A DNA stretch of 63,202 nt, filler included, from Choristocarpus tenellus KU-1152 (GCA_964200185.2; 13 parts of 13 records of this genome joined end to end with filler, not necessarily neighbours in it), one strand, 5' to 3'; shown: positions 13,853 through 21,263, counted from the first letter of the whole stretch. The notes: a model not told the origin generated them from the letters alone. Numbers and translations: made by a program.

Positions 13853-16369
13853 NNNNNNNNNNNNNNNNNNNNNNNNNNNNNNNNNNNNNNNNNNNNTTAA
13901 TTAATTAANNNNNNNNNNNNNNNNNNNNNNNNNNNNNNNNNNNNNNNNNNNNTTTTTTTTTTTTTCTACGGTTTTCCCCGAAACCCCCCCCCCCCCCCCC
14001 CACACACACACACATACATACCGCGTTGGCGTGGTAATAACGATGCCTCATCCTCGCTGGCTGGGTGCATAATATTTTCCGTTTTCTGCCCATCGCGAAG
14101 GTGGGCGTTACTACCCCGGCGAAAACAACTCTACGAAACTGGCAGCAAGGCATAAAGTCCCTTCAACCAGAGTCCTTCGAGATACTGAAAGAAGTGTGTG
14201 AGACCTCGTCACCACAGGTTGAGCACAACACAGTCACACTAAACTATCTGAGCCGCGAGGAGTTTGCCGGCTTCACTTCTCTCAAGCAGGGGCTATGTAT
14301 CCATCTGCTTTCTAGGCAAGTCAAAACGCCACTGTGTTTTATCGTGTAGACAGCAGTAAGCGCAATTAGTGCAGGTCGCTGCACATTGCACAGGAACGTT
14401 AAATAAGTGTCTCCTGCGATGAAGAATGTAGTCGGGCATTGTTGTGTCGAACGAAAAACCCTTCTTGGTATTCTGGTAATTCTACAGTGTGTGTTTCCTG
14501 TGTATGTGCGCTCTTGTCTTTTATGAAGTACGACAATCGATCCATGAATATTTGCTGCAGTGGCGACCTTTTCCTCGTCATAACCTGCACATCATTCTCG
14601 TTGACGTCCTTCATGGCCATTCTCTTTTAGCAGGTACAAGTCGTTCTACGGCAAGGTTCCTACGGCGAGGGACTACAAGGATATCGAATCGGATGCGCAC
14701 ATGTCTGAGATGGTTGTCTCGCGCACCAGGCAGATTGTGCCCAAGGAGAAGTGGACACCAGAGCTCCAAAGGCTGGAAAATGGTGCAGTTGCAGCGGTTA
14801 TCTTCTTTTGCCTTTTCTGTATCTCCTGTGCACCCATACGTCACCCTGCGCCCCTCAATTGTAAAATACACCGTCAGCGTCTTTTTCTGCACCGCACTTA
14901 TTGATTGTTGCAAACCGTTCTGAATTCTGGACGTTACGTGAATGATGCACGGGCTGCCAGGGAAATGGACAGGCTCGCATACGAGAAGTGCAGTATGCAC
15001 AACGTCTGGGTCTAGCCCCACTACGAGGAGATGAAGAGGGAGGTGGCCCAACTCCTGCAGAAGGTTTCATCTGGCGACCAACAGGCGGGGCCCGTCCACC
15101 AGCTGAGGGCAAACATCTCCGCAGTAGTCGGAATGAAACCTCTGCAACGGATCAGAGCCGTGAGTGTGCCTCCTGTGTTCGTAATTACAGCTGAAATGTC
15201 TTGTACCAAAAAAAATAGTTGATGCTTGATAGGATTGGTGGTGGGTCTTCGTCATCATCATGAACTACAGAGTTGCCTTCCCTACAACAAACGTTGCTGT
15301 TTTGTCAGTTCTAGTGTTTCGTTGCTAATAGTGGGAATAGCCAATCGTTTCCTTCAACTGTAGACAACGATCTTGGTCAATCTCCGCCTTGTTTCTGCCT
15401 CCAACACGCGTCACTGAAAAAACCAACATACAGACTGGCGTCCTCGACATGTACTTCTTTCAAACTATTTCGCCCTGCAAGCCGCCTCCATTAAACACGT
15501 TCACCACGTCAACCGTATCATTTGCTCTGTTCGATTGACATGCTTTCGTACTTCCATTACACTCTCCATTTTTAACGTCACCATCGTCCCCTCCTCTCCT
15601 CAACAACGTCCTCCGCTGTGTCCACCACCAGATTCTCGAGAAGGACTCGACTCTACGCGATTACCTCACCACCTGGGATGGGAAATACCAGGGTGTACTC
15701 AACCAGGTCAACCTCCACCAGGTTCACAGCGGGCAGGGCTGTAATGGCGGCGGTGCAGAAGTTGAGAGCAACAACGGATCGGCATCAGATGGCCGTGAGA
15801 AAGAAGGCAAGGGAGGGCGTGAATACCAAGGAGGGGATGGAGACGTGGAGGGGACGAACGCAAAGGAGGGGACGAAGACGAGGGAGGGAAAGGACTGCCA
15901 GACAGGGAGGATACGGGCGAGATGGGTTCTGTCGGCAGTGTTCCTGGTGCGGAAGAAGAACAAAACGGCCATGGAGGGTGGAACGCGGGCGTTTGCTGTA
16001 CTGAATGCAATCCTCTACCTACGTCTCGGTAAGTAATGTAGTTGTAACGGTGCACACAAGGATGGAGGGTAATTAATGGCGTAAGATTGGTTTCCATCCA
16101 ATCCCCCGAACGGATAGATACGTTGTATCTTTTCAGCGGAGCACGCCATTGAACCGGTGGTGTGTTGCGGGGTCCCTCTGTGTGTGGCGCTGTGGTCGCT
16201 ACCCCCAAGTCTCTTTATTTGCCACAGTCCGATTGTGTGTTAATGCATGCACATCACCGACTGTTGTTCTCACCTGTACTACTTCGTGCTATTTTGCGCC
16301 GCGAATTTCGTGGTCCTTCGTAACTGTGGATCCCCGTGTTGCGTTGTTGCGCCCAATTAATGATCTGGA

Positions 16370-16525
16370 AAAATACTATCCTGTCTGTTTAACGCTCTGG
16401 TTCGATGACACGTGCGACAGGTATTCATGCCCAAACTGCTCCATTACGCATATGGGTGAATGTTCCTACGTGGAGATTGTAGGCGACGAGAGGCACAAGG
16501 ATCGATTATGTATCAATTGCCCCAT
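16370..16525 (+). other. PHD-like Cys/His zinc finger
   Basis: YYPVC...TCDRYSCPNCSITHMGEC...DRLCINC: CxxC, HxxxC and CxxC ligand groups. Copy 1 has CPQCSITHMGEC. Followed by a GRGRGRGRGKGKGK basic stretch. Confidence 0.5.
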
Positions 16526-17082
16526 GGCACAGGAGGGCAGTGAAGGGTCTGGATCGGTGGGGAATGAAGCGGCGGGTCGGGGCAGGGGCAGGGGCAGGGG
16601 CAAGGGCAAGGGTAAGGCTCACGCAAGGAGCGCGGGCGGGTCACCCACGAGGCAAGGCCTTTTACGTCCCCCCCCACGCAGCGAAACGGCGGACATGGAG
16701 AAGTGCATGTGGGTCTCGGTGTGGTTGCACAATATACGGACATACAATTCGTCTCTGCGTGTTTGGTTTTGCGTTGGTTTTCACGTAGGTCTTGGCTGCT
16801 TGTACATCATGTGGATTGCTCGTCCTTTGTGCCTTGGATGTGTCGTTTTTTTGGAGGTTTCCATGTGCCATGGAACTTAGTGTTTCGACGTCTACCCTCC
16901 TTACACGAGATGTATCTAATGGGTCTGGCGTTGTGGAGGGTACGGCTTGACATGTTGGGGATGCCGTGGAAATATTGTCAGGACCTCACTTAATGATAGG
17001 ATTGCCTGCACCGTAGCTTACAATGCTGTCCTTCTTGTCGTGCTGTCTGTCTACTGTGTCATGTGTCATGATGTCCAAGCAG

Positions 17083-18619
17083 GAGTGAGAACACTGCACT
17101 ACACGACCTTCACCCTCTCGACCCTACGGTACCCTTAGACCACATGAAAGAGTTTGCCTTCCGCAATGCGCCAAAGCTCGCCATAGTGTCCATTGCCGCC
17201 GAGCCAAGACTCCTCAACGACGAAGAGGCGACCAAACACTCTTGCGTCAGGTGCTTAAGTGCTTGCACGTGAAGATGCATCCTCAGGGCACCATCGCGCT
17301 CATTGTACCCCACCTGTGGATGGCGCAGTTACACCGCCTAGGCGGTGAGTTGCAGCGCAAGCGCTGGAATACGGGGTATATTGCGGGAGACTGTTGCGAT
17401 CCGCCATGGCCGTTATCATTCCGTCTGTGTGCCCATCGAATATTGTGCGGCCGTTCAGGAGATGCTGATTAGGTCGTGTGTCTTTCTTTTTCACTTTCCC
17501 CATGTTGTTTCATGTCCTTCGTACCTTCTAAGATACTTTCACTCTTTTGTGTCTCTTGCTCTTTCCCCTGGGTCCTTCGTAGTTTTTGTTTCATTGTACG
17601 CGAATCGCATGCTGGTGTTACTTGTCTTCACTACATTATTTTTGCCATATTTACTTCTATTATTACTTAATTTCCTATAGTTAGCATTTTTTGCATTTGT
17701 TATTTGCATTGCGTTCCACACTCATTGTACTATTATAATGTCAGTGGTATGAGATTTCATGAATCCCTACGATAACTACTTGTGTGATGTCACTGTCTTG
17801 TTTGACGAATGCCGGACCCACGCGCTCGCTCCCGCCGTCTATTCATTCAGGGGCTCTTATGGCGTCAAAAGTGGGCTTGATTGTGGAGGATCACCCCCAA
17901 ACCCTATTATACAAGACGAGGGGGGGGGGGCACCCTCAATCAGGCACTGATAACCATCTCAGATGTTGTCAGGATATTATTATTCTCGAGCACAACGATG
18001 GGACAATGTTCACATGCAACAAGCGAGTAACCGTCGACGACATCTTGGCCACGGGCGTGATGCATCTCCTCCGGTACTCCAAATCATGTTGGACGTCGAG
18101 TACGAAGGTGCTGCAACGGACATCCCCATGAGGGCCCTCAACTTCCTCGTTAACAGGTTCGTTAATAATGTCACACACACCCTTCTTCACAAAAGAAGCG
18201 ACCTTTTTTGTATAGGTGTAGGAGATCGTTAAACAGTAACACAACGGACTGGATGACGGTTCAGGGGCGTCAAACCATCCCACGAGTGTGTTTCCCTGAA
18301 TCAGTACATTAAGCGTCAAACTGCACCAAGAGTGTGTTGCCCTGTATCAGAACGTTACTCATACATTGCGATATGATGAATCCGTGCGCAATACAATGTA
18401 CTCCTCGGAATAATTGACGAACTGCCCTCCTATGATAGGTACACGAATGCTGGGGACACCGTTGTCTCCTTCAGCACAGAGAGGCACAACGTGGTGGAGG
18501 CGGCCCATGAACGGAGCAGGAGGGTGGAGGTGTTCGTGTCCAACGCGGCGTCAAAGGACGAGGTGAAAGAGAAGATGGACACATCCTTCGGCCAAGCCTA
18601 CAAGGACGGCAAGTGGAAG
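17083..18619 (+). other. Beta-class amino (N6-A/N4-C) DNA methyltransferase-like domain, 3 exons, degenerate active-site motifs
   Basis: Spliced segments follow the N6_N4_Mtase order: KLAIVSIAAEP (position of DLIVTDPPY, motif IV), CLHVKMHPQGTIALIVP (RVLKPGGSI), GLIVEDHPQTLLYK...HLRCCQDIIIL (GF..IIWxK...HExIL), IPMRALNFLVNRYTNAGDTVVSFSTERHNVVEAAHERSRRVEVF (KPxxLLxxLIxxYTNxGDxVLDPFxGSGTTxxAAxxxxRxFIGIE). By-eye alignment to the family consensus. Confidence 0.65.
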
Positions 18620-21263
18620 GTAAGAAGGGTGTGCTGTCTTTTTTTCCCATTGCTTTCCAACTTGTTGTCTGTCTTCGTTCCCTATGGATAGGTCTCGGGC
18701 GTGCGATTGTCCTAGTGATGTTTCCTTGCCATGGTTTACGCGTTGCTAACAGGGTGCACCCTACTACCCACACCACCGCTCGAAATTGCGAGTCTCCAAG
18801 ACTTTGTGTGTGAGCGTCGGTACGTCGTAATGTCCTCCTTCCCCACACAAACAAAAAAAAAACGTGCTGCAGTACACCACAACATCTTTAACCAAAGCTG
18901 GAATAAACCCTACATATGTGACAAAACCTTATCGCATGGCTAACCCACTTCACTGCCACATTGTTGGGCTGTCACATGTACGCACATGATGTTGCAGGTA
19001 TCCACGTCTCTCATTCAAGAACGTGTGATAGACCCTTCCTGCCTGCCGGAAGCCTTGGGGCAGACCCTCGTCCCAACGGAGATGTAGGATGTTTTGCTGA
19101 GGCCGTCAATCCTCAGGGAAAGGCAATGGGACGCGATGAGGCGACCATTTTCGTTGCGAAGACAGTGGCGACGGGCTTCAGCTACCAGATCGAGGTGAAT
19201 GTGGTATAGAATGCACTAAGTTACATATTTTGTGAAGAATGAACGGCAGAGTATAGTTACCGGCACGCATATAACCTTTTTTTTTTATTCCCGATTCCTA
19301 ACCTACCTAATGCGGCACCCAAATACGTCGCGTAGAAAACTATGGGTCTTGCAGGTAAGTATTGGATCGGTAGTGTGTTCAACTTTTTGCCACAACAAGG
19401 TTGACGTTTTTGCACCACCTTCGGACGAGATTACCTCCAATCACGAACATTCATGAATCACCGAACTCTGGCCCCCTCCCCAACACCCCTCGACCCCACC
19501 CAACCCCACCGCCGTCTTTGTCTTCCACAATACTCAGCCGCGTGCAAGCTCGTCCTCGAATCCAGCGGAAATGGCCTTATTCCCGCTTGAAGGGAAAGAC
19601 TACAAAGTCGGCGGAAATGATCTCCCTGCGTGGGGTGATCTCGAAGTGTGCAACTCTTGATCAGAGGCCTTCAGTTCGATCTCTCTTGAAGAACAAGAAG
19701 AACAGTACATTCGTCTGCTTCATGTGGCCAACAACAGACAGCTCAAACGCATGCTTTAACCTGGAATGGAGGTGTGTGGGCCGGGCGCAGCGCTCTACTT
19801 GCGCGTGGCAGCCACTTGCCCTCTCTACTACATGCGTTGGACCAAGAAGGCAGACGACACCANNNNNNNNNNNNNNNNNNNNNNNNNNNNNNNNNNNNNN
19901 NNNNNNTTAATTAATTAANNNNNNNNNNNNNNNNNNNNNNNNNNNNNNNNNNNNNNNNNNNNATGTTTAAAAAAAAAAGAAGGGATTTGTCTCACAGAAA
20001 GGCTAGGAGGAGGGCGGCATTGCTTTGCCTTTTGGAGCCTCCCCCCACTTCCACAAATCGCTTTCCAAGTTGCTACCAAACTCGCGTTAACTTTTGGTCA
20101 ACTACATGAAGGGAACGGCGATCAAAACCATCCCTCCACCAATTCGACTGATGCATCACCTTAGGATCATTCATACCCCAACCAACTCGACACACTCCAT
20201 AATTTCAATTCAATTCTAAGGCCATGCCAAAAATTGCCCTTTCAGTCTTCGGGTGGTGGTATCCAACTACTCTCAACGCTTGTCCAACAATAATACACAT
20301 ACATACATACATACATACATTCATAAATACATTATATTATATTATATTATATTATATTATATATATTGGTTTAAGTAACCGTCGGATGCGAGATTTGTTG
20401 ACACGATCACATCAACCATCATTATCTTCTTTTTTTTTGTTTTTTGTTTTTGTCGACAAAGTAACGAAACAGCCGTGAGGAGGGGACCCTCTCAACTGTA
20501 GGGTTCAGTTAAAAATAAAAATAAAAAAAATAGACGAACAAAATATTTACAGTAGAGAGGCAGGCACGCTCACCGAAATATTATTTTTTTTCCTTGGGAG
20601 TGGGGTTCGAATTGGTGTAAAGGGCAAAGGGTGCACGATTTTCGGGTCGTTAGGACTAGGAATGCTACATACTACTCTTAGAGTAATATGCCTCAATTCA
20701 GCTATTGTAACACATAGTAGTAGTCTTTCCGATTGACCTTGAGGCATGTTTCAGTCCATGGTTGGAGCTCTGTTCTTGACAGCACAGTCGAGGTTAAGTC
20801 TATTATTTTCCCCATGTTGAGTAATGATGACATCATCACCCTTCAACGGCGAAAAGGGTACCATGATATCAAATACGACAGCTACCCTCTACTACTATGT
20901 TGCAAAATAGCTCCATCCGGAATTTAGAAAACTCATCCGCATATATACTCTATATGAGATGTGTCATACATATTTTGTATTAGATGTGTCAAATATATTA
21001 TATATATATCAGGTGTGCGTATCCCCTAGGTTCTAACGAATTTTGATACCTACATCAATAGCACAGTACCATCACGGCAATGAGTTGAAGTCTAAAGATT
21101 CACCCCAGTTATAGAGAGCTCCAATTGCCATATTCACCTATATATATATATATTAATATTAATATTAATCTTTACGCTGCAAGTGCACCCCAGTAAGGTA
21201 CAGGTTACGCTACCACCATGGAGACAAAAAAAAAAAAAGAACCGGAGAGTATCATCATTGTAC

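Follow-up and report, generated by a model that had tools for sequence, protein, structure and literature searches.

The window is a stretch of 63,202 nucleotides (nt), filler included, from the brown alga Choristocarpus tenellus KU-1152 (GCA_964200185.2), and the locus in question is the piece of it between positions 13953 and 19862. This piece has a G+C content of ∼50% and is devoid of a long open reading frame (ORF); it carries a series of short open stretches on the plus strand, which are ten exons of a single gene. Once spliced, the gene spans from 14101 to the end of the piece (Table 1). Except for two coding microsatellite-like arrays and one 45-nt duplication in an intron, large internal repeats are absent. 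The locus is probably one decayed copy, differing by ∼10% from its sister copies, of a highly amplified, intron-containing gene that belongs to C. tenellus or one of its closest relatives. Part of the protein encoded by this gene family is predicted to adopt the fold of beta-class DNA amino-methyltransferases, with the motifs required for catalysis replaced.

Splicing of the gene was assessed with contigs of public sequencing runs that were aligned to the piece; two of the runs (X1 and X2) are from the same organism, and X3 is a third run of the same study. In X3, the depth over exons was much higher than that over introns, and contigs skipping introns were found in X3 only. Such intron-less contigs, with GT..AG at the joints, were observed for 15159/15632, 16028/16421 (read as 16027(+1)/16420), 18156/18439 (five contigs; read as 18154(+2)/18437), and 18619/18998 (read as 18617(+2)/18996). 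At 16709/17086 and 17341/17852, the X3 contigs stem from diverged copies and leave a few letters between the two sides, and the junction of exons 9 and 10 is represented by two X3 variants, between 19166-19193 and 19514-19537. The same junctions are crossed by public C. tenellus gene models; P0004 reads ...FIVNR/YTNAGD (the slash marking the joint), and P0009 and P0012 span the joints of exons 8/9 and 9/10. In its behavior, X3 resembles a transcriptome; the type of library is not recorded, and processed DNA copies are a less likely source of the intron-less contigs. A previous sequence-only reading of this DNA had predicted the junction 18156/18439, which proved exact, and the exons 17083-17344 and 17851-18156, which the X3 contigs confirmed to within 1–2 bases. 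The spliced peptide given there, ...IPMRALNFLVNR joined to YTNAGDTVVSFSTERHNVVEAAHERSRRVEVF, was reproduced as written.

That the gene is present in many copies, also part of the sequence-only reading, was confirmed at two levels. From X1 and X2, 6140 and 5114 contig pieces, respectively, match the whole stretch at 85–99% likeness, with dozens of variants per site. In addition, two C. tenellus contigs (L003 and L004) match the piece, introns included, at 89.7% (over 2.7 kb) and 91–92.5% (over 2 kb) identity, which identifies them, by sequence, as sisters of the window copy within one genome. A more distant copy, residing on a 7.4-kb Logan contig (L001), aligns with the exons alone (69–84% nt identity). 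For example, exon 1 is 69.5% identical to L001:1098-1362, the neighboring introns being unalignable, and exon 10 is 77% identical to L001:6708-6933. This pattern, alignment of exons but not of introns, is as expected if the coding parts are under selection. In one X1 contig, intron sequence (∼18895) is followed by CTAACCCTAACCCA, which is a repeat of the telomere type; one or more copies may abut or be truncated by telomeric repeats.

The copy in the window differs from its sisters by six lesions, three in-frame stop codons and three frameshifts. The TAG at 15013-15015 is private to this copy, position 15013 being A in every other contig of four runs; the other two stops, TGA at 19658 and TAA at 19757, are both in exon 10. 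Exon 6 is frame-shifted at ∼17235-17250, where the other copies diverge (at 17235) and loose ends occur in three runs. In exon 7, the frame changes at ∼18044-18050 when P0004 and P0011 are aligned by tblastn, and many other copies contain one more T behind 18044. A one-base frameshift at 19084-19087 affects exon 9, where most other copies have an additional base at 19086/19087 and where the frame switches relative to P0009 and P0012. Because of these three stops and three frameshifts, the window copy is certainly a pseudogene. The previous reading had ascribed the broken-up reading frame to introns and lesions; with its six lesions, this copy is a pseudogene and not a gene fragmented by introns alone. 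Several annotated C. tenellus fragments are likewise frame-shifted, for example, P0012 at its C-terminus.

To place the gene among its relatives, exon 8 and the public spliced fragment P0004 were used as queries. The former retrieved C. tenellus fragments annotated as "unnamed protein product" at 85–90% identity, plus more distant ORFs of raw assemblies; taken together, window exons 6–8 are 74–90% identical to C. tenellus fragments. The whole-library phmmer search with P0004 returned 55 proteins. Long models are available from Discosporangium mesarthrocarpum (P0022, 555 amino acids), Undaria pinnatifida (P0059), and at least three species of Ectocarpus (P0056, P0067, P0068, P0069, and P0046; P0027/P0060). 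Exon 8 of the window is 35–39% identical to P0022, P0056, and P0060, and two Ectocarpus lineages of the family are only ∼26% identical to each other. Judged by these similarities, the family is brown-alga-wide (Discosporangium, Ectocarpus spp., and Undaria). Word-index protein searches with P0056 and with region 60-469 of P0022 yielded nothing beyond the query and its close relatives in Ectocarpus, and scans of metagenome contigs and viral contigs detected no relative. Two bacterial/metagenomic proteins, P0023 (5477 amino acids) and P0037 (1626 amino acids), showed five to eight matched stretches in the P0004 search; they were rejected as relatives because these are summed chance matches to an adhesin-like TDTDGT...VTATDGFGN repeat.

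The sequence-only reading had also proposed that exons 6–8 encode a methyltransferase of the beta class, with the motif IV region first and motif I last. Sequence searches, for which the window exons were used singly, whereas joined analyses (fold and profiles) employed the public spliced models of relatives P0004, P0012, P0022, P0056, and P0060, did not reveal this relationship. Regarding the METHYLTRANSFERASE claim, Pfam gave no match to PF01555 at an expectation value (E) up to 1, whether the queries were exons of the window or of L001, proteins of the family (nine, full or partial), or excised domains. The Pfam queries comprised ten stop-free pieces of the window, nine exons of L001, seven proteins of the family, and six domains excised from proteins. 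Using phmmer and hmmsearch with single exons and with three profiles (A1, A2, and A3) against the PDB sequences resulted in chance rows only, PHROGs contained nothing relevant for this domain, and a protein atlas search with the exon-8 piece gave no usable match.

In contrast to these sequence searches, structure comparison was informative. Ectocarpus protein P0060 was modeled with AlphaFold2 from a family alignment of 25 sequences and without templates. The predicted local distance difference test score (pLDDT) of the model was 61.9 overall, but block means were mostly ∼75–90 (core ∼80–90) where residues 100-340 are ordered, the loop at ∼219-262 being of low confidence. When the model was submitted to Foldseek, ranks 1–36 were all occupied by beta-class DNA amino-methyltransferases (E between 1e-6 and 1e-4; template modeling score, normalized by target, 0.5–0.67). 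Among the top rows were TTHA0409, M.MboIIA, M1.HpyAVI, CcrM, M.BceJIV, rotifer N4CMT, type III Mod, and M.RsrI; M.PvuII followed at rank 46. VIA-align, which is independent of Foldseek, gave a consistent picture for residues 76-337, with Z scores of 15.9 for CcrM (218 residues), 15.3 for TTHA0409, 15.0 for HpyAVI, 14.9 for MboIIA, 14.5 for both RsrI and BceJIV, 14.2 for Adineta N4CMT, 13.3 for PvuII, and 12.3–13.0 for type III Mod. The MT-A70 family scored markedly lower (8.2–10.6), and the next unrelated chain reached 6.6. Furthermore, hhalign aligned the family with E. coli YhdJ at E 0.003, a hypothesis fixed beforehand, and with a seven-member profile (YhdJ plus six phage enzymes) at E 8.1e-5 over 180 colinear columns. 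In this alignment, YTNAGDTVVSFSTERHNVVEAAHERSRRVEVF is positioned opposite SNxGDxVLDxFMGSGTTAVACxxTGRxFIGxE of the true enzymes, exactly where the sequence-only reading had put the YTN.GD block, that is, at the C-terminal block of the beta class. Thus, model and profile comparison support the beta-class fold and the permuted order of motifs for the family, and a Pfam-invisible protein family of brown algae can be clearly identified at the level of fold.

Despite the conserved fold, the residues on which catalysis depends in this class are replaced. Opposite F-x-G-x-G of motif I, the loop binding S-adenosylmethionine (SAM), hhalign and the family alignment place S-F-S-T-E-R in the window and S-L-S-A-E-R, S-M-H-A-E-S, or G-V-G-V-E-S in other members, the Glu being conserved across the family; only the Discosporangium member has kept P-G-E-G-T. 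In exon 8, the equivalent of motif I is GDTVVSFSTERHNVVEAAHERSRRVEVF (18452-18535), which lacks FxGxG. Exon 6, which corresponds to strands E107-111 and E145-150 of the P0060 model, contains KLAIVSIAAEPRLL (17174-17215) at the position of strand 4 and motif IV, and VLKCLHVKMHPQGTIALIV behind it. The tetrapeptide there is SIAA in the window copy and L001, DLTR in P0060, PLGL in the P0056 group, and SPGK in P0022. Neither (D/N/S)PP(Y/F/W) nor FxGxG was found in any of the nine longer models; in eight of them, both sites are occupied by different residues, and the motif IV stretch is missing from the Undaria model. Consequently, as catalytic and SAM-binding motifs are replaced, the methyltransferase-like domain is probably a conserved pseudo-enzyme, which makes an active DNA methyltransferase unlikely. 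The traces left in Discosporangium (SP at motif IV and PGEGT) suggest descent from an active enzyme of the S/D-P-P-Y type.

Upstream of the exons shared with the piece, and colinear with them, L001 and both Ectocarpus loci (L005 and L006) contain a first exon that lies outside the piece. It conforms to the pattern ...SI.E.GW....P.V......(L/C)LDG(A/N)HR..., of which the LDG(A/N)HR motif is conserved. This exon matched a ParB-like PHROG family (E 0.0016) and, at E 0.005, the N-terminal part of a phage DNA-methyltransferase family 633 positions long; in a language-model search, 27 of the 30 nearest clusters were N-terminal domains of phage ParB (scores up to 0.94). Many phage and plasmid amino-methyltransferases carry a ParB-like domain at the N-terminus. 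Although these scores are weak, they point to the N-terminal exon of the relatives encoding a ParB-like domain. With all exons included, the Ectocarpus gene is estimated to encode ∼1,100–1,160 amino acids.

The Cys/His finger noticed previously is present upstream of the methyltransferase-like domain (16428-16520), but is not of the PHD type; its C-x2-C-x3-H-x3-C-x15-C-x2-C arrangement (x13-17 across the family) comprises six ligands instead of the eight of C4HC3, and no match to PF00628 was obtained. Pfam returned sub-threshold hits only (zf-Sec23_Sec24 at E 0.0011, FYVE, and C1_4). The ligand pattern is conserved in P0056 and P0060 from Ectocarpus and in L001, and the pLDDT of the region is ∼55 or lower; by its spacing, it is a short zinc ribbon-like element. 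Exons 9 and 10 encode a C-terminal domain with the conserved blocks LP.G.P, NDIPvWG, VRLv.VA.N.L, and LYL.V...CP.YY, which, when modeled alone, reached a pLDDT of 74.9 and a predicted template modeling score of 0.73. No Pfam match was detected in 15 sequences of this domain at E up to 10, and no match among the PDB sequences. The best Foldseek hit of the model had an E of 1.1, the ESM Atlas contained nothing similar, and no chain reached a Z of 4 in an exhaustive search. Of the 50 best VIA-align rows, 12 were SET or PR domains (SET8, PRDM2/5/9/11, NSD2, Set1, Set2, and EZH2; Z 2.6–3.5 over 89–104 residues), rows that are not independent of each other. The SET-like exon of the sequence-only reading has, thus, no profile support from PF00856, the structural hints do not exceed Z 3.5, and both the NH pair (NHxC) and the acidic-aromatic end motif (ELxF/YDY) are missing. 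Judged by the model, a SET fold is possible but doubtful; a red-algal precedent (see below) renders it more plausible. Finally, the acidic tail that had been described for the piece exists in the relatives L001 and P0060, but is absent from the piece, whose end falls within exon 10. Altogether, an intact member of the family would probably be a protein of ∼1,100 amino acids composed of, in this order, a ParB-like domain, helical and low-complexity linkers, the zinc ribbon, the methyltransferase-like domain, the alpha/beta C-terminal domain, and an acidic tail.

An accessory protein resembling this architecture has been described. Sola1-1_Ec32, a 21.5-kb transposon of Ectocarpus with 282-bp terminal repeats, carries, opposite to its transposase, a spliced gene for a protein of 1104 amino acids with a ParB-like and an N4C/N6A methyltransferase domain, which the authors suggest may methylate its own transposon (PMC12477816). 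Host (a brown alga), splicing, multiple copies, length (∼1,100 amino acids), and the combination of a ParB-like N-terminus with a prokaryote-type N4C/N6A domain are common to both, and the Ectocarpus homologues P0056, P0067, and P0060 plus their upstream exons fit this type. Yet, neither a zinc ribbon nor the C-terminal domain is mentioned in PMC12477816, the catalytic and SAM motifs are gone in every aligned member of the family, the Choristocarpus family is far more amplified, and the window copy is dead. By analogy, the family most likely belongs to the Sola1-1_Ec32 type of accessory genes. In the genome of the red alga Bostrychia, Plavaka elements encode PAG2, which combines PF01555 with a PF00856 SET domain, and PAG3, which combines a ParB-like domain with a 2OG oxygenase (bioRxiv 10.1101/2025.02.11.637652). 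These, too, are transposon cargo in which a beta-class methyltransferase is followed by a downstream domain (SET in PAG2), with ParB-like modules on the same elements. In contrast to the brown-alga domains, however, those of PAG2 are visible to Pfam, the transposon superfamily is a different one, the ParB-like and methyltransferase-like modules of brown algae are part of one polypeptide, and a SET fold in that polypeptide is putative. In view of both reports, the architecture, which the previous reading did not recognize as described, is of a published kind, as ParB-methyltransferase is known from Ectocarpus and PF01555 plus SET from red algae. The bacterial or phage origin and the possible role as transposon cargo proposed there are in line with what has been reported for Ectocarpus (PMC12477816) and for red algae (bioRxiv 10.1101/2025.02.11.637652).

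With CcrM, M.RsrI, M.MboIIA, M1.HpyAVI, and YhdJ, the family shares fold and permuted order (Z 13–16; colinear profile alignment), but not the DPPY-type motif IV, FxGxG, or a Pfam match; it has introns and, in addition, the zinc ribbon, the C-terminal domain, and the acidic tail. The N4CMT of bdelloid rotifers (PDB 8s9n and 8s9o; Z 14.2) is likewise a horizontally acquired, eukaryotic protein in which a beta-class fold is joined to other modules. However, it is an active 4mC (N4-methylcytosine) enzyme with intact motifs and a chromodomain, and a host protein silencing transposons rather than their cargo. Retention of the fold under selection after loss of active-site and cofactor residues has parallels in METTL14, ciliate MTA9, and the methyltransferase domain of the DIRS1 retrotransposon, the latter also being transposon-borne (PMC4738411). 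All of them are members of different clades of methyltransferases (MT-A70 and PCIF1-like), and where compared, their match to the family is weaker (Z 8–10.6). Several eukaryotic amino-methyltransferases have been traced to phage loci linked to ParB, and the DIRS1 domain is inactive (Iyer et al., PMC4738411).

As cargo of the Sola1-1_Ec32 type, the gene would be amplified together with its transposon, a link that we infer for Choristocarpus. The protein would act as a pseudo-enzyme binding DNA or chromatin, its ParB-like domain loading onto DNA of the element itself, and the methyltransferase-like fold, with the catalytic tetrapeptide and the glycine loop for SAM replaced, would serve as a binding module and not as an active methyltransferase. 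Several points weigh against this interpretation. The fold was modeled on P0060, a homologue 31–39% identical to the window exons, and not on the window copy; motif IV was placed from the secondary structure of the model instead of a residue-level structural alignment, and its position is, therefore, approximate. The scores for ParB are weak, and Pfam and PDB sequence searches with the exon were negative. The likening to Sola1-1_Ec32 is based on architecture, length, and host genus. Lastly, neither a transposase nor a terminal inverted repeat nor a target-site duplication was seen next to any fetched copy, the C. tenellus contigs being too short to provide context. On L005, long inverted repeats are absent, and five short motifs of the Sola1 transposase had no exact match at any locus.

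This lack of transposon hallmarks could also mean that the gene belongs to the host, was possibly domesticated long ago, and became amplified by segmental or tandem duplication. Its occurrence in several orders of brown algae, among which the exon structure is conserved and the introns have diverged, and the location of the Discosporangium copy beside fragments of a sugar-transporter gene are consistent with that. However, a high copy number, ∼10% divergence that includes introns, and many disabled copies are typical of a transposon burst. Moreover, an Ectocarpus protein of the same architecture is encoded by a Sola1 element (PMC12477816), and Ectocarpus copies sit among nested transposons, all of which makes amplification without a transposon quite unlikely. 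It is similarly improbable that intact members are active chromatin writers, in which an N6-adenine/N4-cytosine DNA methyltransferase and a SET lysine methyltransferase would be combined with a histone-reading finger, as the sequence-only reading had it. In its fold, the domain agrees with true DNA amino-methyltransferases, PAG2 does combine PF01555 with SET, SET and PR domains account for 12 of the 50 VIA-align rows, and S-P at motif IV and P-G-E-G-T at motif I have been kept in Discosporangium. Still, both methylase motifs are missing from all nine longer models, matches to PF01555, PF00856, and PF00628 were not obtained at E up to 1–10, the SET rows (Z 3.5 or less), the best Foldseek E of 1.1, and the lack of NHxC and ELxFDY do not indicate a functional SET domain, and the finger has six ligands, not eight. 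Descent from an integrated giant virus (phaeovirus), of which the gene would be a fragment, is very improbable. Brown algae are rich in integrated phaeoviruses, viruses frequently encode ParB-like domains and amino-methyltransferases, and the nearest language-model neighbors of the ParB-like exon are viral; nine spliceosomal introns in the piece, the spliced X3 contigs, a viral contig scan devoid of relatives, and the failure to see viral neighbors at any locus speak against it.

It was not until 2025 that accessory genes resembling DNA- and chromatin-modifying enzymes were described from giant algal transposons, and their functions are putative. The replacement of motifs in all longer members that cover the respective positions argues against the published suggestion of self-methylation by the transposon, because it is the catalytic and SAM-binding motifs that are replaced. 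The family extends to the earliest-branching brown algae (Choristocarpus and Discosporangium) and is massively amplified in the former, which may help explain why the C. tenellus assembly is fragmented. Identification at the level of fold can also help to annotate proteins that are listed as "unnamed protein product" in new brown-alga genomes. Going further, the gene could represent an old, selectively maintained ParB-methyltransferase of the phage type that lost catalysis, kept the fold, and acquired as further modules a zinc ribbon and a strongly diverged, cryptic SET/PR-like domain, a proposition we consider rather unlikely. If true, one polypeptide would unite the ParB-like and the methylase-SET modules that are separate in the Plavaka elements of red algae. 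Giant algal transposons would then share a non-enzymatic epigenetic toolkit, for example, for marking self-DNA, for partition-like clustering, or for decoying host silencing, and a burst of such an element would have shaped the Choristocarpus genome.

Table 1. Exons of the gene in the window and related features at other loci.
Feature	Coordinates	Strand	Remarks
Exon 1	14101..14315	+	VGVTTPAKTTLRNWQQ...GLCIHLLS; AG acceptor 14099-14100; 3′ end approximate, from frame continuity
Exon 2	14634..14782	+	YKSFYGKVPTARDYKDIESD...ELQRLEN; open frame; both boundaries approximate
Exon 3	14932..15159	+	In-frame TAG 15013-15015; 5′ end approximate; 3′ joint 15159/15632
Exon 4	15632..16028	+	ILEKDSTLRDYLTTWDGKYQGV...; low-complexity middle rich in Gly/Glu/Lys; joints GT..AG on both sides
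Exon 5	16421..16709	+	Zinc ribbon-like finger (16428-16520), then linker rich in Arg/Gly/Lys
Exon 6	17084..17344	+	N-terminal part of methyltransferase-like domain; 71% nt identity to L001:4173-4481
Exon 7	17851..18156	+	Middle of methyltransferase-like domain: hairpin, variable region, conserved FTCNKRVT, DIPMRALNFLVNR helix
Exon 8	18439..18619	+	C-terminal part of methyltransferase-like domain; 84% nt identity to L001
Exon 9	18998..19195	+	Start of conserved C-terminal domain (LP.G.P...P; helical pair)
Exon 10	19537..19862	+	Last exon, incomplete at piece end: NDLPAWGDLEV...YIRLLHVANNRQLKRML...ALYLRVAATCPLYYMRW
ParB-like first exon of relatives	L001:65-412; L005:6060-6455; L006:6207-6602		Pfam-invisible
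Pogo-like DDE_1 fragment	L006:16453-16968, 17750-19862	-	Downstream of the copy in Ectocarpus CCAP 1310/34; interrupted by Copia-type reverse transcriptase; region with N runs

The minus-strand neighbor of the gene on L006 was rejected as a Sola1 transposase because it encodes a reverse transcriptase of the Copia type that lies nested within a pogo-like element. Upstream of the copy in Ectocarpus sp. 6, an ORF (L005:3548-4033) ends with ...CSHCNAILWKEEKG, which is reminiscent of the Cys motif found at the N-terminus of Helitron Rep proteins.

Several features of individual exons and introns were observed in addition. At 14316, directly behind exon 1, a candidate GC donor (AG/GCAAGT, the slash marking the joint) was placed by frame continuity; L001, the distant copy, has an identical heptamer. 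The region of exon 2 is covered when L001 is matched to the Ectocarpus loci by tblastx, with colinear order, and exon 4 resembles the N-terminus of the Undaria model P0059. Exon 4 also contains the first of the two coding arrays (15828-15888; 3.4 copies of an 18-nt unit), which encodes a stretch rich in KEG/TxT and of which 53–58 nt are skipped in some other copies. The second array, a GGGGCA hexamer repeat in exon 5 (16579-16617), encodes the RGRGRGKGKGK linker behind the zinc ribbon. At its start (13953-14015), in the intron upstream of exon 1, the piece consists of T13, a run of ∼18 C, and a (CA)n stretch, with lower read depth, a repeat tract that probably explains why the contig ends there. 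The 45-nt direct duplication (80% identical) is located at 18267-18357, in the intron between exons 7 and 8.

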